Positions 15,405-55,353 are shown, counted from the first letter of the stretch. The stretch: 64,000 nucleotides of DNA from Carpediemonas membranifera BICM (GCA_019828565.1 JAHDYR010000024.1:216734-280733); one strand, 5' to 3'. Numbers and translations: made by a program. The notes: generated by a model from the sequence alone, not told the origin.

Positions 15405-15909
15405 GAGAATTTCTATCCAAGCTGTTTACGTTGTTACATTTGTCTATTTACGTAAACTCCTGGCATTGACAATACCTAAAACTGCGACATTTGTCGATCA
15501 TGATTCGAGCAACTAGCCACCAAAAGGTAGAAACGGTAACGTCAGGGCTCGTGGAAGTTGCCAAAGTACAAGATTCTTACCAAATAATCCGAAAAACTGC
15601 TCAGGGCTTGCGAAAGGAAGAAGAAATCAACAAAAAGGTGAATGACACAGAGTTTCTGCTGCAAGAGATACGCGATTTGTTTATAGATGCCATACAGACG
15701 ATGAGGGACAAGTAAAAATGACATTCACTAGCTTTGCTTCTCATTTCACATATTCTTGTGAAATATGTGAAATGTGAAACAGATTCTAGTGAATCTCATT
15801 TTTTCTTGCACTTTTTGGAGTATCTCCAGGGTATCTCCCGGGAGACTCTAGCCATTCCTACAGTATGACCTCGAGCTCCCCTGGACGCTCGAGACCGACG
15901 CTTCAACAG

Positions 15910-21900: not shown

Positions 21901-24900
21901 TCTCAGTGGCCTCCGGGATTGCGCGTTGTATCTCTGCCGAGATTGACTCCTTTGTCAGGCTGGTGAGGGCCGGGTCCTTGAAGTTTGAAGAGACCCGCAC
22001 ACACTCTGCGTACTGCGCTCGCTTGCAGGCCGCCTCAAAGGCAGCAGCGAAACGCTTGGCGATTGCATCTGCGGTGGGATTGTGGGATATAGCTTGCGGA
22101 GCCTCGTCCGAACGGGCCTGAGCTCGGGCTTCGGCGTCAGACATAATGGAGGTCTGGAGGCTCTCAAGAGTGGGAAATTTCGCTGTCGGACGCCAATCAC
22201 GCTTTAACTTCGCGACCGTGTCCGCTGTGAGCGTTTGGATGAAAGAAGTTGGGTTTCTCTCGTGGATAATTGCAGTGGTGTAATCCGCGAGCGCCTGGAT
22301 TGCGCTTTCTGGATCATTAGTCGTGAATTGCTTCATTTCACCGGTAATATCGATATTATGCCGTGTTACGAATGAGTTTTATGCAACCAACTCCCGCAGT
22401 TTAGGGTCACACGGCTGAACCTTATCACCCAGGCCGAGGAGCATCCCCTACCCCTCATCGACGACTTGATTGATCACCTACAAGGCCAACAGTTTTACGC
22501 CACGCTGGACCTATCCAAAGCGTTCCACCAGATCATAATCAACCAGGACTCGCGCAAGTATACCGCTTTTGTGGCTGGTGGGAAGAAATACCAGTATAAG
22601 CGGATGCCCTTTGGGCTTCGTAATGCTCCCATCCACTGCCAGAAAGCCATGGAACACATTCTGGGTCAATCCCTTTATACTCAGTGTCTCGCTTACATAG
22701 ATGACATTGTCGTCTTTGGAGCGAACCGTGACGAGTTCCTGAAGAATCTGGAGGACGTGTTAGCTCGCATCCACGCGGCCGGTCTGAAGCTTAATCCTTC
22801 CAAGACGGTCATTGGAGCGACTTCCATCGACTATTTGGGCTGGCGAGTAGACAAGGACGGTAAGCGGATCTCCCCCGACCGTCTGGAGGCCATCCATGAT
22901 CTCAAGGAGCCGACTAGTCTGACGGACGCCCGAGCCTTGCTCGGGTTCGCGAACTACTTTCGAGCACTCATTGAGCGTTACGTCGATATGACTGAACCCA
23001 TCACCGAGCTCACCCGAGCCGCCGAAAAGTTCGTTTGGGGCGACCGACAACATGACGCGTTTGAGCAGATTAAGCGAGAGCTTCTACTGCAGCGCACGCT
23101 GGTCCACCCCTGTCCCGACGAACATCTCCACATTTTTACGGACGCATCAGACTACGGCATTGGTGGCGTGCTGATGAACGCGGAGTTTAAGCCCATCGCG
23201 TTCTTCGCCAAGACGCTCACGCCCCAACAGCGCCGTTGGTCTACGATAGAGAAAGAGTGCTACGCTCTGTACTTCGGTACTACCAAGTTCAGACGCTATC
23301 TCGCTGGACGAGACTTCACAGCTCATCTAGATCACCGTAACTTGGTCTACATGGACCGTTCCTTGAATTCCAAGGTGATTAGGTGGAGCCTCGCACTGTC
23401 TGAGTACTCATTCGACATCGTACACGTTCCAGGTTCCGATAACTCTGTAGCGGACACCCTGTCCCGCCTCGTTCACCTGGACGAGACCTCCGTCGAACCT
23501 TCCCCTCCACCCGAGGCGCATCGGGAATCCTTCCAAGAAGCACATGGCGGAGATGCTGGTCACCTTGGCCGTGATGCCACCTGCAAACGCATCATAGCCG
23601 CCGACAAGGGCTGGCCTGGCATGCGCCGGGACGTTACTGCCTGGATAAGACAGTGCCCTGTTTGCCAGTTGACACGCCTCAAGCTTTCACCGTTTCCCCA
23701 AGCGACCCATCCCATGACCGGCAGCCGACCCTTCGAAGTAGTGGAGGCCGACACCATTGGTCCCCTCTCACTGTCCGGGCAACACCGCTACGCGGTTGTG
23801 ATTATCGACACGTTTACTAGACTCACCCAAGCCTACCCCACGAAGAGCACGGACGCTGTATCTGCACGTTCGGCTTTATCGACATGGATGAAACACTATG
23901 GCTCCCCGACATGCTTGATTACCGATGGTGGCTCACAGTACCATAACAGAACCATCAGAGAATTTTGCCAAGACCACGGTATAAGACACGAGATCGGTAC
24001 GCCTTATCATCCTGCGGGACAGGGTGCTGTTGAAAGAGCGAACAAAGAGGTGAAGAGACACCTACGCGCCTGGATTCTCGAACATGACGACGACTGGGAG
24101 GACGCCTTACCACGAATCACGAATATAATCAACAACGCACCTCTAACCGCCTCCAACCTGTCGCCGTACGAAGTCCTATACGCCAGGGACGTCCACGAAC
24201 CGACTAGACAACCTTCCCTCACCGTCGACCACTTCCGTACCACCCTACGCTGTTTACAGAGCAGACAACGCGCTGTCGGTGGCCAAACTCCAGCGCAGAG
24301 CCATCCAGCGAGTCATCTCCTTGGATCCGCCGCCATGATCCAGCGCAAAACTGCCATAGGCATCGTACCCCGGGGCCCGGTCCGGGTCATCTCCACCAAT
24401 CCCGACCGCCCCAACACCTACGTCGTTCAAGACCTCACCACTGACCACCGCCTGACAGTACATGCCTCTGAGCTTTACCAGTTCGAGGGCAGCTACACTG
24501 ACGCTGAGCTCAAACACTGGGCAGCCCGCAACGAAGGAGAGTACGTGGTTAGGAAGGTTGCTGACCATCGCCGACAAGCGGGCAACCTTCAGTTCCTCCC
24601 TCTTGTGGGAGGGTTACGATGACGACGAAGGCACATGGACCGATTACAGCCGCGAAATCGATGGATTAGCTGCCCTGGACGCATACATTAATGAGCATCC
24701 GAGATTGAAGCTTCCATCACTCAGGAAGGGACGCCACGCCGGTAAATCCCCCTGAGACGTGTGCTGTTGATGTTGTTTGATGAAGAAAGAAGAGAAGAAG
24801 AGGAAAAGTGATTGCAATCACGAGGATAATGATAATGAACGCAAATGATCACCTAAGAGAGAGAGAGAGAGCGTGAACTCGCCGAAACGAACTAATGAGA

Positions 24901-25287
24901 AGCGATGAAACTGAAGAAGCGAGACAGAAGCGCGAAAGAGACAGAAATGGAGAAGAATGAAGTATAGAGCGTGAAGAATATCATAGTTACGTACCAATCC
25001 GTCGTCACTGGCAACTTAGACGCAATGACTCATTTTGTGCCAAATCTGACAAAAAGGACCAAATTTCCGAAGATCGCAAAAGGAATTTAGATTAGGTCTG
25101 GGGACGACAAGATCTTTTATATTTGATCGATATCTTTCAATTTGATGACAATCCACAATGTTATGGTGGAAGTCATGGGGGCAGTGTAGTGGTCACCTGA
25201 CCCGTATATATTTAGGCCATATTTACCACTAGGGTTCGACCCTATTTAAACACTTCGCATTGATTGTTGTTGTTCTGTGCCACCACA
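15910..25287 (+). mobile_element. Gypsy B: chromodomain Ty3/gypsy, 103-bp LTRs (15910-16012, 25185-25287), 5-bp TSD AACAG; contains Gypsy C
   Basis: Identical TG..CA LTRs; gag 16030, DTGA protease, RT LCLDFRRL|NLIT split by Gypsy C, YIDD, integrase and chromodomain to 24755. Confidence 0.95.
17548..22411 (-). mobile_element. Gypsy C: chromodomain Ty3/gypsy, 53-bp LTRs (22359-22411, 17549-17601), 5-bp TSD CGGCT
   Basis: Identical LTRs; PPT ggggggaag; gag from 22336, DIGA protease, YVDD, TDAS, integrase, chromodomain (IRWEG). Confidence 0.95.
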
Positions 25288-28200
25288 AACAGTGGCGGCC
25301 GGAGGTGTACTCTGGCAGCACGAGGGCACCAGCAAAAAGCCCCTCGCCTACTTCTCGAAGACGTTTTCGGAAACTGAACGGCGCTGGGCAACGATCGAAC
25401 AAGAACTATACGCCATAGTATACTGCATAACAAGACCAGAATTCTCGCAGATACTCAAGCTGAAACCATTCACGGTGCTCACAGACCATCGTAACATCTG
25501 GCTCCTACAGAAGTCAGAAGAGGGCACAAGAAAGCTCACGAGATGGCGGCTAATCCTCACAGAGTATCCGTTCGCCATTCGCCATATCCCTGGAGACACA
25601 AACCTGGTCGCTGACGCGTTGTCGCGTCCAAGTGGTTCTATCCTTGAGCTCTCAAGTCACCCCAGTCAAATCATCGCCAACGCCCACAGCGGTGCCAACG
25701 GACATGTTTCCGTGGGCCAGACCCTCCGCAACCTGCGGAACGCCGGCGAGAAATGACACACCATGGGACAGGACGTTAAGGAGTACATCAAGGAATGCGC
25801 CGTATGCCAGAAGCTGAAGCCTCACCCGAAGACTACCGCGCCCTGGCACTCGACCCAGAAAAGAACACCCTTCGAGACGGTTCAGATCGACACCATCTGT
25901 GGCCAAATAAAGAGAACTAATGACGAAGTGAGGTTTATTCGAAACCCGATCAAGGGCAAAAATGGTTATAACTAAAATTGCCCAACACTTCTCTCTCTTA
26001 GAAGAGTGGGTGACACTCGAGATAATAGTCGAGAGCCTCGAGGTCCCTGACCTCGAGGTAGGGAAGCCATTGGTCGTCCTCGGCACCATAGCCATCCCAG
26101 CGGATGAGAAACTCGAAGGAGGTCTTGTTGGGGCCGCCACGGTGGGCCAGGATCTCTTGTACAAGGTAGGAGTCCTCGTCCATGGCGACGAGCTCGATGT
26201 CAGTGAGGAGGCCATTGGAGACGAAGCGGCGGAGGCGTGTGGCGTGATAGGTCTGGGTGCGACGAGTCGCAGGATTGATAACCTCGTAAATGTCGTTCGA
26301 GCGGGAAGTTATGGTGTAGGGGCCCATGAGCTTGGGGGTCAACTTGCTGTCGGGACGCGTCGGGTAGGTTACTAAGACCTGGTCGCCGATGGCAAAGACG
26401 TCCGAGGTTGAAGGGCCGGGGTTGAAGGTCTGATCCTGGTTAAGGCGGGCTGCTTGAACGAGGATCTCCTGGATTTGGACGATGTCTGGGTGCTCTCCCT
26501 CTCCCTGTGACACTACGTCGATGATGCTGCGGTCGAGGTTGACGGCGGTGCCGAAGACGAGGGCAGCGGGTGACATGCCAATGCTAGAGTTGGTGGTAGC
26601 GTTAAGAAGGCGTTGGACCATGGGCAGGTACAGAGACCACTTGGAGGAGAGTCTGAGTTCAGAGGTCAAGGCGAGGTCAAGGCGACGAGATGACGGTTCA
26701 CCTCGCGGTTGACCCTCTCGACTAGGCCGTTCGCGCGGTGGTGGTAGGGCAGCGTGACGGTGTGGGCCACGTGCAGGGAGGCCAAGATCTCCTTGAAGAG
26801 CTTGGCAGTGAACTGGGAGCCGCCATCAGTGCGGACGGTCTGAGGGAATCCGTAGTGGCCGGCGAACTGGATGAATGCGCGGCAGGCAGACTCGGAGGAA
26901 GTTGAAGGGACAGCGACTAGCTCTGTAAAGCGTGAGAAGTTGTCAACCGTGACGATGATAAACTTGTTACCAAAGTCATCCTCCGGGAAGGGACCCATAG
27001 TGTCGATGGAGACGGCCACGAACGGGTCAGAGGAGAACGTAGGACGCAGGGTAGAAGTCGTCTTCTTGGCTGTCTCGCGGACCTTCTGACAGATGGGGCA
27101 TGAGGCAATAAAGCCCTTGATGTCATCCAGCATGTTGGTCCATTCGATGCCGCGGAGCTTGAGGCGCTCCATGGTGGTCACGGCGCCCATATGGCCGGCG
27201 ACGGGACCATGCACGGACTCAATGTCCACATGATGGTCAGACAGGGAAGTGACAGCCTTGAGACAGCGAGAGAGGACATCTGCGGCCGCGTTGTCGAGGC
27301 CGGGGATGTGATGAATCACGAAGACATACTCTTGGAGACGGAGGCTCCAGCGCACGACCTTCGGGGTCTCACTGCGCGACATGTAGATCAAGTTCTTATG
27401 ATCGGTCTGGACCTCGAAGAACTGGCCTCGGATGAACGGATCGAACTTGGTGATGGCGAAGAAGATTCCATATGCTTCTTGCTCGATCGTGGCCCAAGCT
27501 GACTCAGTCATCGTGAAGCGGCGCGAGACGAAGGCGACAGGTGCCTCCTTGCCGGAGACGGGATCTTGCTGCGCGAGGAGAGCGCCACAGCCGAGCGAAG
27601 AAGCGTCGGTCTTGATCACCAGGGGCTTCGAGTAGTCTGGGAAAGATAGGAGGGGTGCCTGGACGATAGCGCGCTTGACGGTGTCCCAAGCAGTCTGTTC
27701 GGACTCACCCCACTCGAAAACGGTCTTGGAGCCGCAGAGGTCGTACAGGGGAGCCATGATACGGGCGAAATCTGCGACATGGTCACGGTAATAGTTCGCG
27801 AGACCGCAGAAGCTTCGCAGCTCGGAGGGGTTTGACGGAACGGTCATTGAGCCGAGGGCTTCCTTGCGCCAGCTGGAGATGCTGATGCCCTGTGAGCAGA
27901 CCGTGTGGCCGACGAACTCGAGCTCGGTGCGGAGGAAGACGCACTTGCTCAGCTTCAGGCGTAAGTTGTGGGCGCGGACGAGTTCGCATACTGTTAGAAT
28001 GGCCAGTTAATCCGGGGATATACGGAGGATAAACGCAAATTCCTTATTCGTGCTTCAGGGCGTTCGAAGTCCTAAGAAGCAGCTGAAATGATAGATGCGA
28101 GTGCATTAATGACATATCCATGCTTGATGTAACATGTGCGAGATTGGTGGTCGAGCAAATTGCCTCTCGCATTTTAAGGTCGAAGGCAAAAGTGGTCGTA

Positions 28201-29072
28201 CGACCAAGTGGCCTTGTCAGCAAAGTCTGTGTGTTCTAAAGAGTATCCTCTGTTGTTTTTATGCGTCAACTCCTTCTCAGTCGCCGGGAACTAATGACTG
28301 AATCAACCAATCAAAAGAATGAAGCTGTCCCCCAGAAAGCAGGCCATACTACGGTGGTATATAGTCAGTATACATCATCGGAGTATGTTCGGTTTTCTGG
28401 GGGACAGATTCAATCTTCTGTATCTCAAAATTTGCAATTTTTTTATCGGCGATAAGATGGAATCAGAAGACTTGGCTCAGAGCTCAAGTGCACTTAGCTC
28501 CATAGAGCTGAGATCGGCAATTGGCATGATCCACCGCCGCAGAAGGTGCCCAAAGAGGCGCTGACGTTGAGCGGTCGATCATGGCCGTTTAACACATCAA
28601 CGGGGGCCTCATCCCATGCAGTATCCATAACTTTTTACCATTTTCTTCTAGCTGCACTGGTTGGCAAATGAGCATTTTGTGTCGCCTTCATCATGGCAAT
28701 ATTCGAGATCAAATCCAGATTTGCTTTTTTTGTGCACAAGGAGCACAACAGCAAATTCGCAAGTAATGCAGATGAAAATCAGATGAATCTTAATCAGGCA
28801 CTCTCATACACACACTGCTTTAGTTTCGGAGCCAACGTCCATAAACTGAAGGAGTTCTGAACATTGTTTCACCAATTGTGTGAAACTGGTGAAATTGTGA
28901 AATAGTGTTGAAACGGCCAGAGAAGAAGAAGGAACCCCGGCAGCGCAGTTGTAGCTGCTCTTATAGAGCTATAGCAACAGCCAAATTGTCTGATTTATCT
29001 CACAGACCGTTGCGCATGTACCTGCCTAGTTTTTGTACAAAAATCTTGTTTTTTTTAAACTCTACAGAAATC

Positions 29073-31612
29073 ATGGTTGCTCATATTGTGTTCGAGAGCC
29101 ACATCGGTACAATATATGATGACCAGCCACGCTCAGTTGAGCGCATGAATTACCCTCTTGGCTGTACCTACTTCGCCATGGTCGGAATTGGCCTCAACTC
29201 CGCCAGAACAAGACCTCAGCGCGAGCAATTCTGCCAGCTCGTCCGCGAGATGGAGGAGGCGGACCTGATCTCCCAGCGCATTCACGACGCAAGGTTCTTC
29301 CGCCCTCCAGCAGACTCCCGTCCCTTCCAACGTGCCGCAACCGCACACGGAAATCAACACCCTCCTCACCCTGTCTTCGTACGGGACGATTACCGCACCC
29401 ACGCCATCCAGGAGCGTGCTGTGCAGGACTACAACGACTCAGAGGAGCGCTCCGCCAACTTTTCTGAGATCATGGAGCTCACATCGATCCTGATGTACGT
29501 CCGCAATGGCTTCAACTCGACCCAAGAGCTCTTTAAGCTCATCAACAACATCTCCCGCCGGCTTGGAAAGCCGATCTCGAAGAACAAGACCGCGGAGGTG
29601 CTCATTAAGGACCTTGGCATTGACATGACCAGAATATCTGGTGTCTCAGAGGCCCTCACTGAGGAGGAGCGCGCCTTCGTCAAGCATCTCGTGCCGTGCA
29701 GGTCGGTCTCAGGCAATACAACATGGCGGCGTACCATGTCCGGCACGCAGTCGCGACTTGAGCTCACGAACCGTTTGACTGTAGCCGACGGAGCCGAGCC
29801 GACTCCGTTTTTCGACCACGACCTCGTCGCCGACCACACTTGGGAGCGACCGACGCTCACCCTCCACTATGACAGCGAATCCGACGCTGTCCAGCACTAC
29901 CAGTCCCTCAAAGGCAGTGTAGGTATCGCCCATCTGGGCAAGCGACTGAACAGCTCGACCTGGGACAAGGTGGAAACGGTGTGGTTCGATGGCGTGTACT
30001 ATCTGCAGCAGGCAGTGCTTCACCCGGAGTGGCTCGAGTCTGACCAGACGAACTTCGAGCGTTGCTCTCGTGCCCTTCAGGACCCAGGCCATGTCGAGTT
30101 CCAACCACTAAAACTACTCCTGTGGCTCGACGCATGGAAGGGACATACCGCAACGTTCAAGATCCGCATCTACGACCCGTCAGGCTTCACGTTCCCTAAC
30201 CGCATCACTCCCCCCTTCCGACTCGTTGAGTGTCTTGCCGGTGAGAAGGAGCTGACGGAGGAGGGAAACCTTCAACTCGTTGAGGAAGAAGTCGAGCGGA
30301 TCTATCAAGCCCTCATACCGATCAGAGGAACTGACCAGGTCACCACCTTCGACCAAGTCATCGTCATGGGCGATCACGCGGCCATCAGGAAGCTGTCATC
30401 CGGCATCGAGGGTAATGGAGGGCACTATCCCCAGCCCTTCAACAGCATCCGTCGAGACCACAAGGCGCTGCACCCCATTCCGGCGCACTCTCGGGTCACC
30501 TTGCATGATTTGCTCGAGCAGAAGGCAGCGTTCCACGCCGTGCAGGCCGACCCCGACCGTGTGCAGGACCCGAAAGAGGAGTATGGCAACTTCTCCGACA
30601 AGAGGGCCATCTTCGAGAACCGGCCAGAGCCCCGAGTCATCCACACGGAGCGAGTTGTCTTTTTGTCCTCCGATCATGCACAACTCGCACCGCCTGCTCG
30701 AGCAAGTGGCACGGCTATGCGCCAGCTTCCCCGCTGATCGGAACGCAACTGCCGTAGACAAGCGCAAGCTCCAGCGCATGTCATCCAACCGCAGTATTGA
30801 CCGCACTGTCGGGTGCAACGAGCAGTCTGCTGCCAGAGTTCGCATGGCGAACACCACGAACGAGGATTACGAGGCTCTTCCTGAGTCCGTCCAAGATATT
30901 GTGCGACTCATTGGCTATCTCCAGGCTCTTTACTACTCAACCGAGCCTGTCACCGACAGCAAAGTCGCATTCCACTTCTTGGCCGCGTCCATGTGCCACC
31001 TGTTCCACGTCATGCTCAGTCTGCAGGCACACCAGACAAAGCTGGCGTTGCTCCCTCCTGGGCAAGCAGACAAGGCGGAGAAGCCATGTGCCCAGACACT
31101 CTATGTCAACAGCAGGCTCACTGCCCAGCCTCTTCTTCACGATCATCTCCGCATTCCTCTTTTTTTACCTCCTCGAGGAGTTCTTTGAGAGAGAGTTCAT
31201 CAAGAACCAGGAGGTCCGAGCCGAGTTGCACAGGTCGGCCATGATCGAGAAGCTGTGTTTGACCGAGCAGACCACCCTCATCTGCACGTTCTTAACGGGT
31301 ATTCGCTCGTTCGGTCGCCAGGACTACTCAGTCCCCCCGCTGAACAGGCTTCGTCGTGTCCGAGTCCACCAATGCTGCAGACAAGCTCGCTCATGGTTCG
31401 CCATTCGCAGCCACATGGAGGCAAGGCACCAATTCCATGCCACGGCGGCGGTGGTGCGCCTCTTCCAGGAGCTCGTTGACGAGATGTGGCAGTACGTCAA
31501 CGATTATACGGCTTTGGCATGGGACGAAGAGTCTGGGGTGATGGTTTGCGAGTTGGCAGACATGGGTGAGGAGCTTGTTTGCTGCATTTGCGGTCATGCA
31601 CGCGCTGAGTAG
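29073..31612 (+). CDS. Putative DDE transposase, CMC/Transib/RAG1-like; frameshifts near 30660 and 31130-31170
   Basis: WLDAWKG (D), VMGDHAAIRKL..G..YP (D), PPIMHNSHRLLEQ, LEEFFERE (E); all conserved in copy 2; largest ORF inside the TIRs. Confidence 0.65.
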
Positions 31613-31734
31613 TGAGTAAAGGAGTTTTATTGGTCAGTACATCCCATTTGGTGTGTTTCCCCAACTACCAATTTTTTTTTCAACATTGGTAGTTTCACAA
31701 TTTTCACATTACGTCACTTGTTTGGTGAAAAACA

Positions 31735-32660
31735 ATGGAAACGCCACTTCCGACATGGCTGACGATGAATTTATCGCAACACAAGGCCTATATTCAATAT
31801 GTCAAGCTTTCAGACAAGTCTGAGCTCTTGCCGTCTGTCAGGGCCTTCTTCAACAGAGATCTGGCGACTTCGAACCTCGACTGTCTGAACTACTCATTCG
31901 TCATGTATGTCAGACCCACTACACTTCTTGTTAACACAGTCTCATCGCAATTCGTGGGGTTGAGATGGACAACATCAAGGCTGCATGCCTTCTCTTCCGC
32001 GAGTCGTACAGGGAGGGGCAGACCCTGAGCGGACAACTGCACCAGGAGCGGTTTGTCATCGGCTTACGGACAGCCGTCTCCTGCAGAGGTCTTGGGTTCG
32101 CGAGGGTGCTTCTTAGCATAGCATCTGCCGAAGAACTCGTCCGACTGCAGTGCGACAAGCGACTCCAGGACATGTATGCGTCCTTTGGCCTCAAGGAGTC
32201 ATCGGACCCGTCGCAGGTCGAGCAGCTGGTGGACACGGGGGGCAACCCACTTGCCATTGTCACGATGGAGGGCACGATGGGTCCCAACAAGTGGACCAAC
32301 CTCGGCAAGAGCCTGACAGAGTGCTGTGGGATGATAATGCAAGGCTCTACGTTGATCCGCGTGACCAACCATGGTAATAGACTTGATCAGCACGCTCATG
32401 GGATGCCTGCTTCCGACAAGAGGAGTGTTGACTCGTTCGTGGAACGCACCCGTGTGTCCGTGCGCCGTGAACGTGCGGCAAAACGGCCTAACGTCACCCG
32501 CATCAGGCAGAAGTTGATGATTATCCGCCATTACAACCTTCGTTCTTTCACGCTGGTCAAAGAGATCAAGGAAACGAGGACCGAGATGCGTAAGGAGAAG
32601 AAAGCCAACTTCTGGGACAGTGAATGGAATATTTCCGTTGAGGATGACGAAGAAGTGTAA
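31735..32660 (+). CDS. GNAT acetyltransferase (35-nt intron 31905-31939)
   Basis: Acetyl-CoA motif A LRTAVSCRGLGFARVLL and downstream MYASFG; the intron GTATGT..TTAACACAG joins the two ORFs in frame. Confidence 0.75.
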
Positions 32661-32684
32661 ATGAAATGAAAATAAAACAAGAAT

Positions 32685-33389
32685 TTATAGCTCCTGTGCC
32701 GAACACTCTAAGTAGTAATTCATGATGGCTTGGTATACCTTGCGACGCAGCACATCACGCGATTCTGCCTCAGCACGTTCCGCATTCCGCTTGGCAATGA
32801 CAGAAGTGAGCTGACTGAGTGTCTTAGCCTCCTTCTTCAGAACTCTGGTGGGTCTGGCGAAGATGAGATCCGCGTCGCGGTCACGGCAAGGCTTGCTCAG
32901 GACGAGCTTGACGTCATCGACCGTCACACCGCACGATGAAGCAGCGAAGGCATGGACCTTAGCCCGGTAGGCGATGGGAATGCGGTGAAAGGCATCATCC
33001 ATCTCGCGGACAGTCGCGATGAGTGGGTCGTCCGTGTCCAGCTCATCTGTCTGGGCGTCAAGACTGAGGAGAGCCTTGAAGCGGTGACGCTTGTCCTCAT
33101 CACCGCCTCCCTGCCACTTGCGGCTGATCTCTTCGACCGACTGGAGATTGCCGTAGAGCTTGTCCTTCTTCAAGGAGGCTACTTTCATTTTAGGGACCTC
33201 GGCGGCAAACTTCTGGCTGAAGTCGACAACCCATCCGTTTGCGCGGGTAATATCGTCATTATTAAGGAGGAAATTGCTGATAAAGGTCTGAACGATCTCG
33301 ATGGGCGTCTTGTGAGCTTTTCGGGCTGTTTTCGTGGACTTGTTGGACTTGCTCTGGCTCTTTTGCTGCGCTTTCTTGCCAAGAGCCAT
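32685..33389 (-). CDS. Conserved hypothetical element protein (ORF-X), Lys-rich N-terminus
   Basis: Homologous to 59670-60357 (RFKALLSLDA/RFRALISLDA, VIAKRNAERA/VIEKRNAARA). Confidence 0.8.
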   Translation of the reverse strand: MALGKKAQQKSQSKSNKSTKTARKAHKTPIEIVQTFISNFLLNNDDITRANGWVVDFSQKFAAEVPKMKVASLKKDKLYGNLQSVEEISRKWQGGGDEDKRHRFKALLSLDAQTDELDTDDPLIATVREMDDAFHRIPIAYRAKVHAFAASSCGVTVDDVKLVLSKPCRDRDADLIFARPTRVLKKEAKTLSQLTSVIAKRNAERAEAESRDVLRRKVYQAIMNYYLECSAQEL

Positions 33390-34127
33390 TCTCCTCTCCT
33401 TTTGAGCTTCAGTGGCCTGTATATTGCCTTGTTTACTTCTTTGCCATCGTTGTTTCCTTAAAATGCGTGTGAAAATGTGAAATGAACTGTGACTCTCGAC
33501 ATTGCTGCGCAGCTATGGTATTCCAACGGCACAGAACGGGTTTATAGCATGCATATGATCCATTCTGGTGCCTTTATCCTCTATAACCAACATCAGTCCA
33601 TCAAAAATGAATCTTGCAACAGAATACTCATCCACACGCATCGAGAACGAAAAAGAAGCATATAACCAACATCAACAACCTAATAGAAGGCTGCATGCAA
33701 GCGTAGAGCTCTCCTAGTCAATTCTTCATTTTCACCACCATCGATCTCCACGTCAGGATGAAACCGTGCGCCCAAAAGCTCAGAGATGCCGTTATAGATG
33801 ATATAACGACGTCTCTGAGCTTTTCAGCGATTTCAGTTTCTGGCCATGGATAAGCTACAAATCCTGTCAATGTTGTCCTCAGAGGACACTGAAAAATTTA
33901 ATCTGTGTCCTCTGAGGACCAAATTGACAAAATCGAAAATGGAGCGATGAGATGTCCATCGAAAAACGGCCAAAACAGCGCAGGTGCAGAATGAGCTGAA
34001 AATCGGCCAAGGGGTAGCTCTTGGGTCTTTATGGCTGATCGGAGGTATTTACATGACAGCTGGCAATATTTATTGAGATAAAACGTATTTCATTTTTCGA
34101 GAAAGTCTTCTGAGGACCAAATTGACA

Positions 34128-36304
34128 ATGGTTAACGAAGACATCATCTCTCTCGGCAAACTGAAGGAGACAATGCTTGCTCCTGACGATTCTGGTATGT
34201 CACTTTCATTTTCACGGTCCTATTTACACAGATGATTCATTCCGTGCATACGACGCCCTTTCGTCCACAAAGAGCCGTATAACCTGGCTGCAAGATCACG
34301 GCATCGTCTCTGATGACCCTCTGTTCTTCGTTTGCGTCCGTCTGATCAGCATTCGTACGATCAACGTTGTTTTCGGGTTCCCGTTGAAGCGCACTTTAAG
34401 CCAGCACGTTCACGACTATGGAGTTGCCAAACTACGCGCGATATGTGACGCAACTAACCGCAACTACCTCTGCGAGGTCGACTTTGACTCTCCCGACACA
34501 ATTGAGGCATTCCGACGGAAGTTTTGTGACCACTTCACCGCCAAATCTGTTCATAAGGCTCTAGTCGGCGTCGACTCGCTCCCCTGTTGAGAAGCAGGTT
34601 GAGATTTACCGCGCATTCCACCTTGTGTTGCGCCACAAGGACTCGAAGAAACTCGATTCTCGTGTTCCGGCAGGCCAATTTGGCCAGTTTATCGCCCACG
34701 CCCAGCTCAGCAAGAAGCTGTCCTTCGCTGGCTCAGAGAAGCTGGCCGAGGAGTTGGCTAAGATCGGTTCGCTCGATCCGTCAGCTCCTCTGAAGAGGAA
34801 GATCGCTCGTCTTGAGAAGGAGCTCGCCTCATCGACTGCTGCTCTGATGAAGGTCCAAGAGGAGTTAGTCCGGGCCCAGGACCACTCAGCAGCAGCCACC
34901 AAGCCTTCTGCCGTCGTTGCTGCCCCTCAGCCACTTCCGGTTGTCGACGCAGAGTCCACGACACACGATGAATTTTCCGACACTGACGAGTCCGAGTCTG
35001 ATGACCACTCTGAACCGGCCGCCATGCAGGGTGACGGCGTTCCTTTGCCCCAGACTGATCAAGACATCGACGTAGAGTCTGATGTGGACGACACAGACAC
35101 CGTTGGTTCTCTCCTTCAGCAGCTAGACGACACCATTGCAGGCCTTGATGATGTCCCTGAGTCTGTGCGCTTGTTGGAGCAGTACGAGCCCTTGATAAAA
35201 CGGCTTGCTGAGGAGAGGGAGGCGAGGGAGGCGCTTGAACAGGCTAACAGAGAGTCTGAGGAGTCCCAGAAGAGACTTGAAGCTGAGTTAGGTCAGCAGA
35301 AGGCCGAGGATCAGGCGATCCATCAGTTTACTCAAGCAGAGTTGGCACGGGCGAGTGAGGCTGGGCTTGAAGCGCTCGCCGATGAACTCGAGGACAACTG
35401 GGCTGAGCTTGTCAGGCGCGCCGAGGAGGCAACAGTGGAGCTTGACCGCTACGTTCCTCTCGCTGCCTTGATGGTACTGTTCCAGAGGAACAATGTGACT
35501 GGAGCCTTATGGACTCGGATCAATAGCACCATGATGAGGTACGGGGGCCAGAAGTTCATAACGGTCCCACCTCTCGACCTCGGTCTGTCGCCAGAGATGA
35601 AGGCTATCATCAAACAGCACTCTCCGACGCCTGCCAATGTTCCCCCTATGCAGATATACTTACGGAGCGACGTTGATAGGCAGAAGTACATCGACGTGGA
35701 GTACGACAAGGTAGGCGAGCGAGTTCTCAAAGATCGTAAGAGTTGGCGGAAGATTGCAGTCAACCCGGATGGATTGTGCATCGGCTACTGCCTGCAGAAG
35801 GTTGAGAATGGCGAGTTCGACAAGAAGTTTGCGGCAGAGGAAGTGGCAGCAGTGAGGGAGGAGGTGCGCGCCTGGGGATTCTCCGATGCTGGCGAGAGGC
35901 TGAGGCTTGAGACGTCTAACGTGTTCGTGCCCACCCTGATGTTCGACGATGCCACTGATTGGTACAGCAACTTTGGTGTCATGGCCTGGTCAGCTCTGAA
36001 GAGCAAGACTGTAGTCGTTATCTGGGTCAAGATGTTGACGTACCATGACAAGTATATTGTGCGGATGCATTTGACGGAAGTTTATGAGTCCGGCATGGTC
36101 CGGCGTGGATCTGATGAAGATGTGGCTGCGGCGCAAGCTATTGTGGTCGTCAAGGATGAGCATGCGACGCTATTTGTCCGCAAACGTTCAAAGGGTGGTA
36201 AGAGAAAGGCTCATACGACTTATATCAAGCGCAAGGCAGTCGATAAGGATCGCGAAAAGAGAGTTGTTGATGCCGAGGACGTTAAGCGTGGAGTTCCCGA
36301 GTAA
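34128..36304 (+). CDS. Acidic/coiled-coil protein with C-terminal OTU-like cysteine protease (37-nt intron 34195-34231; frameshift near 34583)
   Basis: VNPDGLCIGYCL (OTU D-G-x-C) and VVVKDEHATLF (His); syntenic with the clearer OTU in copy 2. Confidence 0.6.
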
Positions 36305-36330
36305 AAAAAGAGATGTTTTGACATTTTAAT

Positions 36331-37141
36331 TCATTTCTTCCGCTTCTTGAGTGCCGGATACTGCTCCAGGAACCTTGTGAGATAGTTTGGATGAGAAATG
36401 GGCAGACTCGGGAACCTAGCAATGGTTAAGACCTCACCCGCATCAAAGAAGATCTCGCCGTAACTGATACGAAGAAACTCTTCGGCCTGAATGACGTTCG
36501 TCGACTCAACCGCAAGGACTGGAAGGTCCTTGAGCAAACGGTTGGTGAACTGGCAGTTGGTGTCACTCTCACTGTGGTTGATGAGGTGTACACCAATGCC
36601 TTCACCTTCGCCGGCGTCGACGTGAATGTTGCTAGCGTCGAATGAAATGCTGTGTAAAGGCATAATGAACAATGAACAAACACCATGTTGCTGTTATTCG
36701 CGTGGTAGTCCTCGTCGGACACAATCCTACCGGCGTAAATGCCGAGGAGCTTTCCGGGCTCAATTGCGGCAGTTGCAATGAGGCCTCTACCCACGTCCGT
36801 GTGGTCGGGAGCCAGACAAGGCTGCACCTCAACGGCAATGGAGGGGTGGGTCAGCCGGGTGGATAACCAACTCGGGGGGTTCGAGGGGAGGAAGGTCCTT
36901 CTCGGCCTCTTTAAGCTCCCCTGATCGACTCCTCGGGAGTGTTTGGGTAGATCGCGGCGACCAGATCCGGATGCAGTGCCTGAGTATGCACAACGGATTC
37001 AATGATGGAATCTTCGCTTGAGGAATCCTCCTGAGAATCATTTGAAGGCGCAGACGGCGGCGTCTTGCCCGCAGTGGACGTAATGGGTATTCTGATACCC
37101 CCAGGCTGCGGCTTTGGTGGGAGCGCCTTTCTTCTCGCCAT
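36331..37141 (-). CDS. SET-domain lysine methyltransferase (32-nt intron 36650-36681; upstream frameshifts)
   Basis: GRGLIAT..I..G..LGIYAG, HLINHS..NC and EFLRISYGEIFF. Confidence 0.85.
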
Positions 37142-37327
37142 CTGATTTTTTTTTGCAAACGGACACGCGGTATTTCTCGGGATTGATGGGGCCGTCTCAC
37201 ACCGTAAAGGACACACATACAATATCTTATCTGTAACACCAGAATGCTTGCTTATTGTGGTCCATATCCTTCCCTATAGCTGGTTCGGCCAACTACCAGT
37301 GTTGGAAAAAAAAGTGGTAGTTGCCAA

Positions 37328-38353
37328 ATGGAGAGGAAATTTGGCAAATTCGGTACCAGACGCATCAGCGACCATCCTCTCACGTATGAATGCGTCTGTG
37401 GAATCACTAGGCCGCGTTCTGACCTTCGCAACCAGGGCCTGAAGGAATATGACGGAATCAGGTACACGCATGACTGCCCCTTCACCCTGAGCAAGCTTGT
37501 GAACCGCCGCATCGTTATCCTGCTCGAGCCAGTCCATGGCTTCGAAGCACCTACTTGTGCGAACCCGGTCTTCACTGTCACCGGGCTTGCTGGCTCCGAG
37601 GGGTACCACAAGCGCATGAAGGCCATCCTCGATCTCGTCAGCGACGAATGGCTCACCACGGTTGCCGTCAGTTTCGTCTCGACGACCCACCTCGGCTCCA
37701 TACTGCAACAGTTGGCTGCAGAATTCGCCAATTTCGAGACATTCTGGGTTGTTTCTGGCCACAGCGAGACCACAACGTCGAGAATGATCGTTAATGCGAG
37801 CGCTAACGAGTTCCTGTACCTTCACGATATCGTACAGATGATCCTCTTCGCTTTCCGTGAGCCATCCCTCGTCACCACCAGCCGGGTTCGGCTCATCTAC
37901 TTCGCCACCTGTACCGGAGCGGACAATAGCGAGTTCTCTCTGCTTAAGCAGTCCATTTCGACCCAGGCATACGAGCATACGTGCATCATTCTCACTCCGG
38001 AGAAAATGCTTGCCAAAGAACTCGTCCTGCAGGACTGCTTTTGGCTCTACCGCACTACATGCATGGACAACCCGCTCCACTTCGTCTCGCGTTACTTCTC
38101 CGGCTATGGGCTCGCACCTGGCACAGCAGGGAGACGGGTTATCGCGAATGGATCAATGTCCATAACCCCGGGCGCGATTGAGATCCTCACAGCCACTCAG
38201 TTCCGCACGCCAATCCCTCTTCCCGAGATGGTCGACCTTGTTTCTGAGGTACTTGCATATAGACCACTGCAGAGATCTCCGGCGGATGTTATGGCCTCGC
38301 GCTACATTACTGAGATGACAGTTGCGCACAGAGCGGCACTGGAAGACACTTAA
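37328..38353 (+). CDS. Putative clan CD (caspase/CHAT/separase-like) cysteine protease
   Basis: Intact 341-aa ORF; FWVVSGHS and RLIYFATCTG give His/Cys after hydrophobic strands; conserved in all three copies. Confidence 0.55.
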   Translation: MERKFGKFGTRRISDHPLTYECVCGITRPRSDLRNQGLKEYDGIRYTHDCPFTLSKLVNRRIVILLEPVHGFEAPTCANPVFTVTGLAGSEGYHKRMKAILDLVSDEWLTTVAVSFVSTTHLGSILQQLAAEFANFETFWVVSGHSETTTSRMIVNASANEFLYLHDIVQMILFAFREPSLVTTSRVRLIYFATCTGADNSEFSLLKQSISTQAYEHTCIILTPEKMLAKELVLQDCFWLYRTTCMDNPLHFVSRYFSGYGLAPGTAGRRVIANGSMSITPGAIEILTATQFRTPIPLPEMVDLVSEVLAYRPLQRSPADVMASRYITEMTVAHRAALEDT

Positions 38354-38376
38354 AGTTCAAAATCTCCCTATTTAAC

Positions 38377-39586
38377 TTACTCAATTGGCTTCATATCCGC
38401 CACCTTCTGGTAGACAGTCATACACTGGTCGCAGAACCTGACACGATAGTCCTGGCCGTCGAGATGGAACTCAGCATAGCTGAAGTGTTTCTCTTCGCAG
38501 AACCAGTTTAGGCACGCCCGGCAGACGCCAGTGTCCTTTGTCGACTTGTCTCCGTCCTTGATACACGCGTGACATCTGTTAGACCTTCCTGCCAGACTGC
38601 AAGCTGCGCAAACCTTTCTGTTCTTACCATCAATCCTCTTCTCTCTGACACACTGAAGATGCATGAACTGATGGCAGAGATAGCACGTTTCATACTCGTT
38701 TCTTTTCATGTTTGGGTTGAAGTACCATTCAGGTGAGGGCACAAACAGCGCATGCGAACAGTAACTTACGCTGATATAGCTTCAGAAACGTCGCTTGCTT
38801 GAGGGCGGGGACCTTATCGTTCATTTCAACGGCCTTGGGTGACTGCTTGAGGAGATCAGTGACAGTTGTGGAGAGTGAAGCCGTCACCATCGCGGCAACC
38901 TCCTTCAAGTCAGCCTCTTCGAGCCTCGATCGCTTCTGAGCAGGCTCATGCATCTGCGCATCAAAATTAAGCTTCTTGACGGGGGAATCAGGCTTGATGG
39001 TAGCCAAGTCAGCTCTTTTTCTGAGCTTTGGTACCAATGTTGTCACTGGAGTCTTTGTGGGTGTCTCTGCGGGTGTTTCTGCTGGGGTACGTGGCTCAGG
39101 CTGGAGCTTGCGATGCTTGATCCTGATTACAACGGCTGGAGGCCATTGAATGCCGGTGCAAGTGATCAGACTGGAGACATCGTGGAGTCCAAGTCCCCGA
39201 AACAGCACAGACATCCTGTTTCTAAACTCCTGCAAGTGTTCAGCTGCATTTGCTCTGTCTCTGACAACCAGGTAGGGTATCTTTGTGCCAATGAGCTCTG
39301 TGCCACCCTTTCTACTTGCCACAAATGCCTGAATGGGCTCAGTAGTCGTGCGCCTGACGGAGTTTGCAATAGCAATCTTGCGAAAGCCGTTGCAGAGGCC
39401 CGATATCACATCCTGCATGCCAAGGAGAGCGCGATGAACGTCAGAGGTCGTCAGACCGATAGTTGGGATGTCCGCGACGTCGAAAAAGCATTCCAGGAAG
39501 CTAGTCACGAACAGCCGGCGGTACTCTGTTATGATCTTGTTATTATCACTTTGAATAAGCAATGAATGGTTATGCAACATCAGCAC
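38377..39586 (-). CDS. PHD-like Cys-rich finger protein (frameshift near 38740; start uncertain)
   Basis: CAVC..CYLCHQFMHLQC..CAAC is C4HC3, followed by further CxxC pairs. Confidence 0.75.
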
Positions 39587-42500
39587 CTACCTACGAATCA
39601 CAAGAATGCCCCTAGCACGTCGTATGCAAGCAAAAATGAGACTTACCCGTACCTTCCGCACGTTTCTCTACGTTTCACAAACGTTGGTGAAACGTGTGAA
39701 ATAGTGAAAAAGATACGGGTGAATCTCATTTTTTCTTGCAGTTTCTTGTGCAAAAGGGTGTTTATCCTCCGTATATCCCCGGATTAACTGGCCATTCTAA
39801 CAGTATGCGAAGACCTGATGCAGAAGGGAGTTGTGGCCCTCGATCGTAGACGCGTGTACGATGACATCATCAAGGTAGCACTCGACCCCGCGGCCCAAGA
39901 GTGGAGCTAAGATCCGCATCATGCCTCGCTGGAAGTAGGAAGGCGCGTTCTTGAGACCGAAGGGGACTCTAACGAACTCGTACAGGCCGTTGTGCGTGGC
40001 AAATGCAGTCCGAGGAACAGCTGTTGCGTCGAGGGGGAACTGGTGGTAGCCACTGCGCAGGTCAAGCGTGGTGAAGTACTTGCTGCCATTCAGGCGAGAC
40101 AAGATGGACTTAATGTTCTGCAGGGGGAATCGGAAGTCGCGGCTGACTGAGTTGAGGAGGCGGTAGTCTACGACCATCCTATGTTCACCGTTCGTCTTTG
40201 GCACGACGAAGCAAGGGGCGGAGTAAGCCGACTCCGATAGGCGGATGATGCCAGCCTCAAGGAGGGCCTCGACCTCTCGATCGATGACCTCAGTCATGGC
40301 CGGGGAGAGCCGGCGAGGGGGAACGTGGGTCGGAGTTTCGTCTGTGACGGCGATCTCCATAGGCTGAACCTTGGCAGGCTCACGAGGGATGGGACCGAAG
40401 ATGTCTTCGAACTCGCGAGCGAGGGCTGCGACGTTTTCATCGAGCTCGATCTGGCCATCTTCGTCAAGGGGTGTAACCTCGCCGAGGTCCTGAGGCTCAG
40501 TCGCGGGAGGAGCCAGTAGGTTGAACGTTTGGATCACGTCGAACCCAAGGATGAGGGGCTCACCGGTGTTGAGGACGTGGGCGCTGATAGTACCTCCGAC
40601 TGAGTGGGGAGACCTGTTGACCTTGATGTCAAGGAGCGTGCGATGGGCAGACGTGGCGATGCCATTGGCCGTGCTTATCTTGAGCTCATCAGGGATCATG
40701 ACCAGGCCCAGAGACTTGGCCAGCACTGGGCTGATGAAGGATGAGGAGGCGCCTGTGTCGACCAGGGCGTCGACGCGGTCGGTGCTCTGGGGAGCAGGGG
40801 AGCCGACGGGCGCGAAGGCTCGTACGTTGGTGCTGAGGCGCATGACTGGTCCGCTTGTTGCCATCTTCAGAGAGATGGGCGTCGTCCGGCGGCCCGTAGC
40901 GAAGAAGCCGGGCTTGGACTTGTTGGGGCAGTCAGGCCTAAGGTGGCCGGAGAGGCCGCATCCATGGCAGACAGGCTGCGGCTTGGCAGGGGTACCGGCA
41001 GGCTTATGGTTGTCTGGTTTGTTGGATGGGAAGTGGGGAGCAGGCGCTGCGGTAGCGTGAGGACGAGTGGGGTGGAAGCTCGGAGGCGGACGTGTGGCCT
41101 GAGGGCGCGGGACCTCGGGCTGACCGAACTCGGCGATGGTGCGCTTGGCCTCAGCCAAGGTCTCGACCTCTTGGAAGGCGGCACGCTTGGCGTCGGCGAG
41201 CGTCTCAGGTTCGGAGGCCTTGACCCGGCGGCGCAGTGAATCTGGGGACAGTCCGCGGATGAAAGTGCGGCGTAGTGTCTTCTCATCGGGGAGGTAAGTG
41301 GAACAGAGGTCCTCGACGCGGTCGAACCTGTCGAGGTAGGCGAGCAGAGCGCTGTTGCTGGCCGTCGTGGAGGACATGGCGGTTGCTTCCAGCTTAGACA
41401 GAACGGCCTGAGTGCTCTTGGGAGCGAATAAAGCGGAGTAGATCGCCGACAGGACGTTTTCATCTGGAAGGTCGTCAAAGTTGTCAATGCGAAGGCGGAT
41501 CAGGCGTAAAACACGGCTGGAAATGAGCATACGGACAGATAGTGCTCTGTCGTCGGGAACTTGGGCGGAATAGGCCTCGAACTTGTCGTTGAAGCTGCAG
41601 AAGGCCGTTTCGGAACGAATGTCGTTGAGAAAAGGGGCTGAAATCGTTTGATAGTCCATGGCGGTGAGTAAGTAAGCTTACTGTGGCCAAATAAAGAGAA
41701 CTAATGACGAAGTGAGGTTTATTCGAAACCCGATCAAGGGCAAAAATGGTTATAACTAAAATTGCCCAACACATCGGACCTCTTCCGAAGGACGACGGCT
41801 ACAAGCACATCATCGTTTTTATCGACGCTTTTTCCAAGTTCGTCGTGCTGAAAACCGTGCGCTCCACAGGAGCAGATGAGGCTGCCAGCGCAATGCTGGA
41901 GGTCTGGTCACTGTTCGGGGCCCCCCGAGCCATCCAGACAGATCAAGACACGCAGTTTAAGAACTCCGTCATCGATGAGTTGAATAAGCGCATCTCGCTC
42001 AATCACCGATTCTCTACAGCATACCATCCTCAAAGTAACGGCATAGTAGAACGCACAAACGGAACTATCGTCCGTAGGCTCCGCGCTCTGCTCATCGACA
42101 GCGAAACGACCGAATGGACGCCATTCCTGCCAATCGTGCAGCACATTATCAACACTAGCGTCCACTCCACAACTGGATTTACTCCTTTCGACATCCTCTT
42201 CGGGCACACGTCGTCACTGACACAAATCTCGCCTGAACAACTTATTGACGCCACGCGCGCCTCTCCCGACATCCATGAGGCCATCAGTCTCTTCCACAAG
42301 GACCTTAACACTATACACGAGCAAGCTCGTACACGCATCAGCGCCTATGAGAACGCCAACGACGCTCACCAAACCACAGACGACATCAACTGGAACGACG
42401 AAGAGCTCGTGCTCATCCGTTATCCTACCAAGGCTCCCAAACTCCTACCTCCACTCCGCGGCCCCCTACTGATGTTTGGAGGAGGGAAGAGTCCCAACAC

Positions 42501-52635: not shown

Positions 52636-53775
52636 CCCCAACGGAATCCTAGGGCTTCGAGACATCTTCTACGCAATGACAGAGCCCTTAGACCCGAGAG
52701 AGGACGAAGAACGGCGCCTAGCAGAGGCCAAGGAGAACGTCACCATCCAACCAGGGCACAGGGACATGAGCAAGTGGCCTTCCGACCACAAGATCGAAGA
52801 GGCCATCCTCCAACCGAGAGAACAGAGCAACATCGAGTGGGACAGTGAGAGAGACAGCATTGAGGGCAGAGAGACGGGTACATTCACGCTCACATCAGGG
52901 TATGGAGATGAGAAAGCCGTCGAGGCCATCGCAGGAGAGGAGGTGTGGGACCCCACTAACCAGGGCCTGGTCACCAGGATCGCTATGGAGCAGGACGATG
53001 GCACCTACAAGGTCCTCATCGACATCAGAGATTGCAAAGCATGGCAGATCACCAGATTCATGGAGGAAGGCAGGGACATCCTCAGGTTGCAGGCCCCGGA
53101 GGCGCCGGCGGTCTGGCAGGCAGCTTGGTGCAAGACAGGAGTCAACACGGAGGGCAGAGGCGCAATAAGGGCACAAGGACAGGAGACGCCGCTCAGCAAC
53201 AAGCTCGTCTTCTCTGACGTCAGGGCCAGGGTGATCAATGCCACCAGCCGCCGCCAAAAAGAGGGACAGGGAAGAAGAGTCAGACAACGAGAGCGGCGCA
53301 CAGACCAGCCAAGAGGAAGACCCCAAACCCAAGGTCGTGTTGACACAAGCGGAAGGAGTGAGCGCCAGAAGGGGCCTTGGAGCCGAGCTTGATCAGCAGG
53401 AAGAAGAGAGCATACCCCGAGCATCAGAGGGAAGTGCATCAGCAGGGAGCCTACCGGAGGCATTGCAGAGTCAGGTTCAGAAGAAGCTCATCCTCGGTTC
53501 TATCGACTTCGAGTGTGGAGATCCTGGGAGTGAGAGGGCAGGGATCAGTGCGGTGCCGACAGAGGGGGGGCTCGTGCTAGTGGACGTCGAGACGGGGGAG
53601 GTCGTTGGCCATGGCCACGGCCTCATACTGTAAGAATGGCTAGAGTCTCCCGGGAGATACCCTGGAGATACTCCAAAAAGTGCAAGAAAAAATGAGATTC
53701 ACTAGAATCTGTTTCACATTTCACATATTTCACAAGAATATGTGAAATGAGAAGCAAAGCTAGTGAATGTCATTT

Positions 53776-54000: not shown

Positions 54001-54086
54001 ATGTCGCAGTTTTAGGTATTGTCAATGCCAGGAGTCTACGTAAATAGACAAATGTAACAACGTAAACAGCTTGGATAGAAATTCTC

Positions 54087-55310: not shown

Positions 55311-55353
55311 TGTTTAGTGAGAGATGATCATAAATTGTATATATATCTGTTTA

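Follow-up and report, generated by a model that had tools for sequence, protein, structure and literature searches.

What does a DNA transposon do with a set of genes that resemble chromatin enzymes? The question is raised by a stretch of 64,000 nucleotides (nt) from Carpediemonas membranifera BICM (GCA_019828565.1, JAHDYR010000024.1:216734-280733), hereafter the window. Here, a DNA transposon of 11.8 kb with perfect 48-bp terminal inverted repeats (TIRs) occupies positions 27987-39807. This element, which we call copy 1, was singled out by an original prediction made by reading the window alone. According to that prediction, it carries seven genes, in the order transposase, GNAT, ORF-X (an open reading frame, ORF), OTU, SET, His/Cys protease and PHD. 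In this study, we found that copy 1 belongs to a cut-and-paste DNA transposon family of Carpediemonas that is mobile and has moved recently, and that most of the accessory genes are under purifying selection. With moderate confidence, we regard these genes as a selected multi-gene accessory set acting for the element, which would maintain its expression or mobility in repressive chromatin.

The ends of copy 1 are sharply defined. An inverted-repeat scan showed that the arms 27983-28034 and 39760-39811 are complementary at 100% over 52 nt. The extra palindromic bases beyond the 48-bp TIRs are part of the target and not of the element, and hence the element proper spans 27987-39807. The length of the target-site duplication (TSD) was tested with a script that joined the flanks after deleting the element plus 0 to 4 bases, followed by blastx. 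Deletion of the element plus 2 bp produced a single continuous alignment of 671 columns to an intact gypsy pol, whereas the other tested lengths gave two pieces in differing frames. Since only the 2-bp removal restores the frame, the insertion of copy 1 is clean, with a 2-bp CG duplication. The interrupted region is the reverse transcriptase (RT) coding part of a gypsy retrotransposon, with an RVT_1 match (E 4e-22) in ORF 39797-41659 on the minus strand. Thus, the perfect TIRs, the clean insertion into a gypsy RT and the seven genes in the order and orientations first described were all confirmed in copy 1, as laid out below in window positions.

25897-41775, minus strand: host gypsy, interrupted in its RT by copy 1, with long terminal repeats (LTRs) of 95 nt that are 99% identical (LTR pair and RVT_1)
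27985-27986, no strand: left TSD copy, 2 bp (CG), from the removal that restores the gypsy pol frame
27987-28034, plus strand: left TIR, 48 bp, with the 5' start CATACTGT (inverted-repeat scan)
28312-28420, no strand: left subterminal palindrome, 52-nt arms, 79% complementary (inverted-repeat scan)
29145-31609, plus strand: gene T, transposase with a RAG1/Transib-like predicted fold, frame-broken at 30660 and near 31160; its intact homologue in locus L009 has 851 amino acids
31729-32660, plus strand: gene G, a conserved N-terminal block, a putative GNAT-like core with an invariant R-G-x-G-x-A motif, and a basic tail
32685-33512, minus strand: gene X (ORF-X), conserved in the subfamily comparison, with a weak helix-turn-helix hint
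34177-36304, plus strand: gene O, acidic/coiled-coil, with a predicted C-terminal OTU-like domain at 35693-36292 (OTU profile matches in PDB)
36331-37038, minus strand: gene S, predicted SET-domain lysine methyltransferase (Pfam SET in sister copies)
37328-38353, plus strand: gene P, 341 amino acids, predicted caspase/CHAT-like protein (clan CD) with an N-terminal CxC...HxC (Foldseek; His145 and Cys195 invariant)
38377-39586, minus strand: gene Z, predicted PHD (C4HC3) plus FYVE-like zinc finger, 5' end deleted and frame-broken at 38737 (ligand pattern and PDB profile)
39625-39740, no strand: right subterminal palindrome, 58-nt arms, conserved in part in subfamily B (inverted-repeat scan)
39760-39807, minus strand: right TIR, 48 bp (inverted-repeat scan)
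39808-39809, no strand: right TSD copy, 2 bp (CG), from the restoration of the gypsy pol frame

The same architecture recurs at other loci, which are numbered with the prefix L and were fetched from assembly GCA_019828565.1, except for L009 and L010, which are contigs of GCA_002919055.1. The elements of the family measure 11.3-12.1 kb, with TIRs of 48-50 bp and a TSD of 2 bp. The search for TSDs at the ends of the full-length sister copies yielded CG/CG (L002), GA/GA (L004) and GC/GC (L009), next to the CG of copy 1. The GA/GA pair is non-palindromic, and this settles the 2-bp reading. In addition, a 7-nt terminus is common to subfamilies A, B and C and to L009, with ends of the form 5'-CATACTG...CAGTATG-3'. 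An Rfam scan of the element gave no match.

Recent movement of the family, as first proposed, is supported by copies that are 99.4-99.7% identical to copy 1 and lie on at least four other contigs. Together with copy 1, these copies (L001, L002, L003 and L012) form subfamily A, of which L002 is a full-length member of 12,130 bp. The LTRs of the host gypsy are 99% identical, which indicates that the retrotransposon is young and the insertion of copy 1 younger still. Subfamily B comprises L004, L005 and L006, its full-length reference being L004:1402-12735 (11,334 bp, 50-bp TIR with one mismatch), and subfamily C comprises L007 and L008. Subfamily B is also represented twice in the window.

53624-64000, minus strand: copy 2, inverted relative to copy 1 (tblastx colinearity), with about 1 kb lying beyond the window end
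8773-15867, plus strand: copy 3, a fragment in two parts (8773-10954 and 15377-15867), split by a gypsy at 10948-15380

Copy 2 is colinear with copy 1 by tblastx, with 68-72% nucleotide identity in patches. The diverged subfamily had been credited with the same genes, order, orientations and catalytic motifs. For subfamily B, to which copy 2 belongs, colinearity and the retention of the catalytic motifs were borne out; subfamily C has no OTU domain. Copy 3 is 99% identical to copy 2, as anticipated, but corresponds to just the terminal 2.7 kb of a B element. The gypsy that splits it (4.4 kb, LTRs of about 83 nt, 96% identical) lies inside the PHD gene and encodes protease, RT, RNase H and integrase domains. 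In word-based protein searches, Carpediemonas copies were the sole matches. The gene P ORF (37328-38350, 341 amino acids) is 100% identical to a hypothetical protein of C. membranifera, and the relatives of P come only from C. membranifera or from unannotated contigs; all those found sit in element copies.

Gene T gave no sequence match in Pfam, NCBIfam or PDB, even with a 17-sequence profile, and a single-sequence PDB search was likewise negative. A profile search among 1.84 billion representatives retrieved 19 relatives. The named ones are C. membranifera proteins of about 760-910 amino acids, and the others derive from unannotated short contigs. The alignment from this search was used to build an AlphaFold2 model of the intact L009 transposase, with a predicted local distance difference test score (pLDDT) of 76 and a predicted TM-score (pTM) of 0.73. 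When this model was compared with PDB by Foldseek, the top 40 matches were all RAG1 (E 3e-9 to 2e-5, 520-820 columns, target TM 0.41-0.54), followed by HzTransib, the amphioxus RAG-like protein (BbRAGL) and P element transposases. Three acidic residues are invariant, D339, D425 and E585 (P0016 numbering). D339 is located on the first long strand, D425 directly after strand 410-424 (strand 4) and E585 in helix 582-596, a placement that fits a DDE enzyme. E585 falls within a conserved RTxGCxEQ motif, which we take to resemble the EGNES motif around RAG1 E962. Also conserved is PPxMHxS(H), an H-x2-H in which the second H is variable; there is no C-x2-C. Judging from the model, T is an enzyme of about 850 amino acids of the DDE type with a RAG1/Transib-type predicted architecture. 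We treat its lineage as an unclassified one that functions like RAG1/Transib-type enzymes and is structurally nearest to them, and we file it neither in Transib, whose TSD is 5 bp, nor in CACTA.

In the accessory gene Z, the C4HC3 series C-x2-C-x18-C-x2-C-x4-H-x2-C-x13-C-x2-C, with canonical spacing, is invariant in seven sequences and is followed by a second Cys cluster. A Z profile searched against PDB matched many PHD fingers on module 1 (best E 8e-5) and FYVE domains on module 2 (best E 7e-5), while Pfam PHD_4 reached just E 0.018. No kelch-like domain was detectable in Z. For the family in general, NCBIfam returned nothing useful.

Gene S was recognized through its intact sister copies, as the ORFs of the window gave only sub-threshold SET matches in Pfam. 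The score was 38.6 bits in subfamily B (L004:8808-9335, minus strand), against a cutoff of 22.4, and 30.3 bits in subfamily C (L008); SET is annotated in L003 and L008. The protein carries HLINHS and RIDYG/RISYG, that is, the NHS motif and the C-terminal Tyr. Its nearest PDB match is a LegAS4-type SET domain (E 2e-5), followed by SETD8, SUV39H2, MLL and ASH1L. The S ORF is one nt short after GTGTTTGTT in subfamilies A and C (window position about 36680, L008 about 9090, L007 about 17480) and continuous in subfamily B; a shared real frameshift, a systematic base-calling error and recoding are candidate causes. We rejected an annotated 32-nt intron in S, because its excision would drop conserved residues.

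The O proteins of subfamilies A and B were not linked by BLAST. The two share a D-G-x-C box and, C-terminally, an H-A box, and further members were found by hmmsearch of all loci. In the Cys box, G and C are invariant, and the six sequences extending to the His box all retain its H. O had no Pfam match, and its single-sequence PDB search gave nothing. With a seven-sequence profile, all seven PDB matches were OTU domains, including OTUD3 (the best, E 1.4e-3), nairovirus L-protein OTUs (5e-3) and EschOTU. With both boxes present, O is predicted to carry an OTU-like cysteine peptidase domain. In subfamily C, the acidic middle part of O is kept, at 89% identity to A, and the OTU domain is absent. 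Across this middle part (window 35018-35677, L007:16335-17030, L008:7947-8642), the A and C proteins are 88-89% identical, as compared with 27-48% for the other alignable genes of the two subfamilies, suggesting a recent exchange or gene conversion.

For gene P, a structural model (pLDDT 66, pTM 0.71) was compared by Foldseek. The 50 listed matches consist entirely of caspases, CED-3, MALT1, SAVED-CHAT and C11 proteases; the best has an E-value of 3e-5, and 44 have E <= 0.001. Two consecutive strands end at the invariant residues G144-H145 and C195. Near the N-terminus, E-C-V-C-G...H-x-C is also invariant and hints at a zinc knuckle. P is thus predicted, from its modelled fold, to be a caspase/CHAT-like cysteine protease of clan CD. 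Gene G has no Pfam or NCBIfam match. Its R-G-x-G-x-A motif lies in a strand-helix context and precedes an RLQC...Y...G block. Four of its nine weak PDB matches are GNATs aligned on motif A (E 0.6-2.6), and a GNAT-like acetyltransferase is plausible. Gene X is 30-36% identical between subfamilies and has a homologue in L009. Its profile gave no meaningful match in PDB. The searches yielded only weak helix-turn-helix hints, and X is a putative DNA-binding protein. Overall, four of the five folds proposed from the outset (SET, OTU, PHD and caspase/CHAT-like) held up, and GNAT is retained as plausible yet weak.

Selection on these genes was estimated with the Nei-Gojobori method on well-aligned blocks. 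Across subfamily pairs with 27-57% amino acid identity, the proportion of nonsynonymous differences (pN) was 0.31-0.48 and that of synonymous differences (pS) 0.60-0.87. The corresponding rate ratios (dN/dS), in which dS is saturated and dN biased downward by the block filter, were 0.13-0.23 for T, 0.14-0.23 for P, 0.31-0.36 for G and 0.41-0.46 for X. Z gave 0.26 in one pair, its dS being saturated in the other two, and O gave 0.68 between A and C at a dS of 0.29. Most cargo genes are under purifying selection; the direction is firm, the numbers are not.

The composition of the set varies among lineages. In the second assembly (GCA_002919055.1, WGS prefix PPCM01), two contigs, L009 and L010, carry a related system. 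The L009 element measures 11.6 kb, has 74-bp TIRs and the CATACTG terminus, and lies inside a gypsy pol with a GC duplication. Its genes are T, O (with OTU), P, X, S and Z, some of them oriented differently, and G is missing. In more distant T lineages of C. membranifera (L005, L011 and L013), a Z-like gene lies immediately upstream of T in divergent orientation, and one of them has a SET-like gene (22.3 bits). Neither G nor P, the caspase-like gene, was detectable beside these distant T genes; for P, the negative also covers the lineages sampled in L011-L013. Hence, the cargo is modular: T is constantly paired with the PHD protein, commonly accompanied by SET and frequently by OTU and the protease; GNAT is limited to subfamilies A, B and C. 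The claim of a selected multi-gene system, for which dN/dS between copies had been set beforehand as a check, stands in part. The ratio is well below 1 for most genes (0.13-0.46), with a higher value (0.68) for O between A and C, and purifying selection extends across three subfamilies, with the system largely kept in the second assembly. The set itself is not fixed. Family members lacking parts of the cargo, another anticipated counter-sign, do occur (C for OTU, L009 for GNAT, the distant lineages for P and G), while the PHD protein accompanies every transposase lineage examined.

Copy 1 itself departs from its sisters. It lacks 313 bp at 39530, and with them the start codon and the first 23 or so codons of the PHD gene. 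Indels of 1 nt that are private to this copy lie at 29049, 30660, 33440, 33603 and 38737. It is probably a defective and recently inserted member of an active family, and probably non-autonomous. Where the 99.5%-identical copies differ by a 1-nt indel, the site is almost always a homopolymer run of 3-10 nt (for instance at 29049, 30660, 31332, 37145 and 37305). The C. membranifera assembly combines MinION R9.4 and Illumina reads (PMC8516963). The homopolymer indels point to residual Nanopore errors in repeats, where ORF integrity is untrustworthy. In the transposase gene, the frame breaks occur at differing homopolymers in subfamilies A, B and C, and the Illumina-only relative L009 has a single uninterrupted ORF of 851 amino acids. 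Given this placement and the intact L009 ORF, the frame breaks are weak evidence of decay. Introns were rejected as the origin of the frame changes in T, since the breaks lie at other homopolymers in each subfamily.

How could such a set serve its carrier? In the mechanism that we favour, the transposase would excise the element and insert it at its CATACTG ends, and the accessory proteins would serve the element rather than the host. They may act on histones and rewrite chromatin locally, as presumed from their folds. The PHD protein could link the machinery of transposition to a particular state of the histone tails. SET, GNAT and OTU might add or remove marks on lysines, and the protease would cut some target. 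As an outcome, the element would stay expressed or mobile in repressive, transposon-rich chromatin. A more specific version is possible, if doubtful: an unrecognised metamonad lineage with a RAG1/Transib fold and a constant PHD partner, following a RAG1-RAG2-like logic, would read and reset chromatin, either over its own copies or over the retrotransposons that it targets, with SET as an added writer, OTU as an eraser, and a caspase-like protease and a GNAT besides.

Several points weigh against an accessory set that acts on chromatin. The histone specificity of the cargo is assumed from folds, and the E-values behind the GNAT assignment are near 1. The dN/dS values are rough and biased low (saturated dS, only well-aligned blocks), and O reaches 0.68 between A and C. 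The L009 SET lacks the NHS motif, which the L010 SET keeps. The cargo varies by lineage, and thus no enzyme is indispensable except perhaps the PHD protein. Many C. membranifera ORFs are frame-broken, whether by real defects or by Nanopore homopolymer errors. Finally, the C(2)C and H(3-4)H motifs, a hallmark of the clade suggested by the fold, are not conserved in T.

Gypsy pol was hit independently four times, as seen for copy 1 and in the L001 right flank, both L004 flanks and both L009 flanks. These insertions fit guided targeting or plain nesting in DNA rich in transposable elements as well as they fit anti-silencing. Under targeting, the PHD/FYVE-like protein, maybe together with SET, would read retrotransposon chromatin and steer insertion to 'safe havens', in parallel with the chromodomain of chromoviral integrases or the PHD of RAG2. 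Besides the insertions, the RAG1-like fold of the transposase and the presence of Z as the one gene beside every transposase lineage speak for this explanation. However, gypsy pol is absent within 800 bp of the other copies, nesting in regions rich in transposable elements also results from weak selection against such insertions, and no kelch-like domain is detectable in Z. Moreover, targeting leaves OTU, the protease and GNAT without a role. We consider this explanation unlikely.

Somewhat less likely still is a toolkit for conflict in which histones are not the substrate. In this case, the OTU, caspase-like, SET and GNAT proteins would act on host defence or ubiquitin signalling, or would process proteins of the element, like the effector sets of other systems of genetic conflict. 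In line with this, the closest solved SET structure is that of LegAS4, of bacterial effector type, the OTU profile matches viral L-protein OTUs, known from the literature as deubiquitinating and deISGylating, and the best fold matches of P include SAVED-CHAT defence proteases. Yet LegAS4-type enzymes methylate histone H3, and the C4HC3 signature of the PHD is typical of histone-tail readers. The substrate is not inferable from sequence, which also counts against this toolkit.

It is very improbable that the cargo is passive, that is, captured host genes or decaying ORFs without a role for the element. The many frame breaks of the assembly and the variable cargo content would agree with it, but most 1-nt indels lie in homopolymers of a Nanopore assembly (PMC8516963), and pN is well below pS over deep divergence. 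In addition, the catalytic Cys/His pairs, NHS/Y and the C4HC3 ligands do not vary, a second assembly retains the set, and all P relatives found sit in element copies. That the 11.8 kb are a mosaic of nested elements or a mis-assembly is barely credible: the surroundings are a dense transposon nest, but units of 11.3-12.1 kb that share their ends and are flanked by a 2-bp TSD are found again at unrelated loci and in three subfamilies, and removal of the element restores the host ORF.

Other features of the window and of the sister loci were also recorded. The LTR pairs at 15907-25287 (106 nt, 100% identity) and 25897-41775 (95 nt, 99%) add to the gypsy of copy 3, and the region from 8.7 to 42.8 kb of the window is a nest of young gypsy elements plus the DNA transposon. 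Host genes, Mem_trans and a thymidylate kinase-NUDIX fusion, lie at 47.7-51.3 kb. Window 39-7382 contains ORFs of 556, 439 and 1042 amino acids among diverged internal repeats (1872-2117 versus 3525-3767; 2409-2506 versus 4059-4157); the 1042-amino acid ORF, the sole one scanned there, had no Pfam match. At L008:644-19196, perfect 49-bp subfamily C TIRs stand 18.5 kb apart with mismatched flanks (GT and TC) and no TSD, and represent either a pair of elements or a single one that gained large insertions and lost its TSD. In L012, two subfamily A left ends (13841-14383 and 18424-18969) are inverted and face each other 4 kb apart, with 99-100% identity over about 546 bp. A candidate left terminus of a subfamily D at L005:399 and L013:8897 was rejected as a true end, as the supposed flank is identical at both. 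L013:1-8242 and L012:724-8389 belong to another kind of element, with long inverted ends made of tandem units of about 1.1 kb, each containing CATACTGTG. These elements enclose an OTU-like gene (L013:2358-4247, L012:1303-2892) and a gene of 451-453 amino acids, without a transposase, and may be non-autonomous relatives.

Transposons with a single anti-silencing or epigenetic cargo gene are already known. A set that joins a reader with one or two writers, an eraser-type peptidase and also a protease, kept under selection, would be by far the richest of this kind, and would make this family a natural system for studying how mobile DNA manipulates chromatin or ubiquitin marks. That a deep-branching protist has a transposase of RAG1/Transib-like predicted architecture, which lacks the usual zinc motifs and leaves a 2-bp TSD, bears on the diversification of RAG, Transib and CACTA, and the constant PHD-finger partner invites comparison with RAG2. 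C. membranifera has been reported to lack ORC/Cdc6 and other canonical DNA-processing components (PMC8516963). Chromatin enzymes borne by an element may weigh unusually in the genome biology of this organism.

With respect to known systems, the closest structural likeness is to Transib, RAGL (ProtoRAG) and RAG1-RAG2. The predicted architecture of T is that of the RAG1 core, HzTransib and BbRAGL, including the D..D..E arrangement, and the CATACTG terminus with its CA..TG ends resembles the heptamer. RAG2 carries a PHD finger, to which the accessory protein Z can be likened. Unlike Transib, with a 5-bp TSD, the present family has one of 2 bp. T has no sequence-level match to RAG1 or Transib, even with the 17-sequence profile, and the likeness is confined to the fold. 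Further differences are that the zinc-binding C(2)C/H(3-4)H is not conserved, that Z has no kelch-like domain and that five further accessory genes are present. From CACTA/EnSpm, the family differs by having no CACTA termini, no 3-bp TSD and no Tnp2-type signal (Pfam Transposase_21).

Accessory anti-silencing or peptidase genes occur in VANDAL21 (VANC), in MULE and CACTA elements (Ulp1) and in Helitron-type elements (OTU), in each case as single cargo genes and with other transposase superfamilies. To our knowledge, none of these combines SET, OTU, PHD, caspase-like and GNAT genes. In agreement with the original prediction that no such TIR element has been described, our literature searches (Repbase and Dfam being outside the comparison) yielded no account of this family or of a TIR element joining these five.

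The CMCT clade is defined by a DDE/RNase H fold, 5'-CA..TG-3' termini, a TSD of 2-5 bp and C(2)C and H(3-4)H motifs, and ESTA is reported to resemble RAG1 by HHpred only (PMC12730594). Our family shares with this clade a modelled DDE/RNase H-fold transposase, CA..TG ends, a 2-bp TSD, a large multi-gene element and, as with ESTA, a purely structural likeness to RAG1. It differs in that T lacks both C(2)C and H(3-4)H, and neither Pfam Transposase_21 nor any other CACTA signal was found. Fungal KDZ, Plavaka, hAT7, PHISTA and other TIR elements keep a TET/JBP dioxygenase over the long term in several lineages (PMC12730594). Those elements carry one enzyme that acts on DNA bases, whereas the family described here, in a metamonad, carries four or five genes predicted to modify or read proteins.

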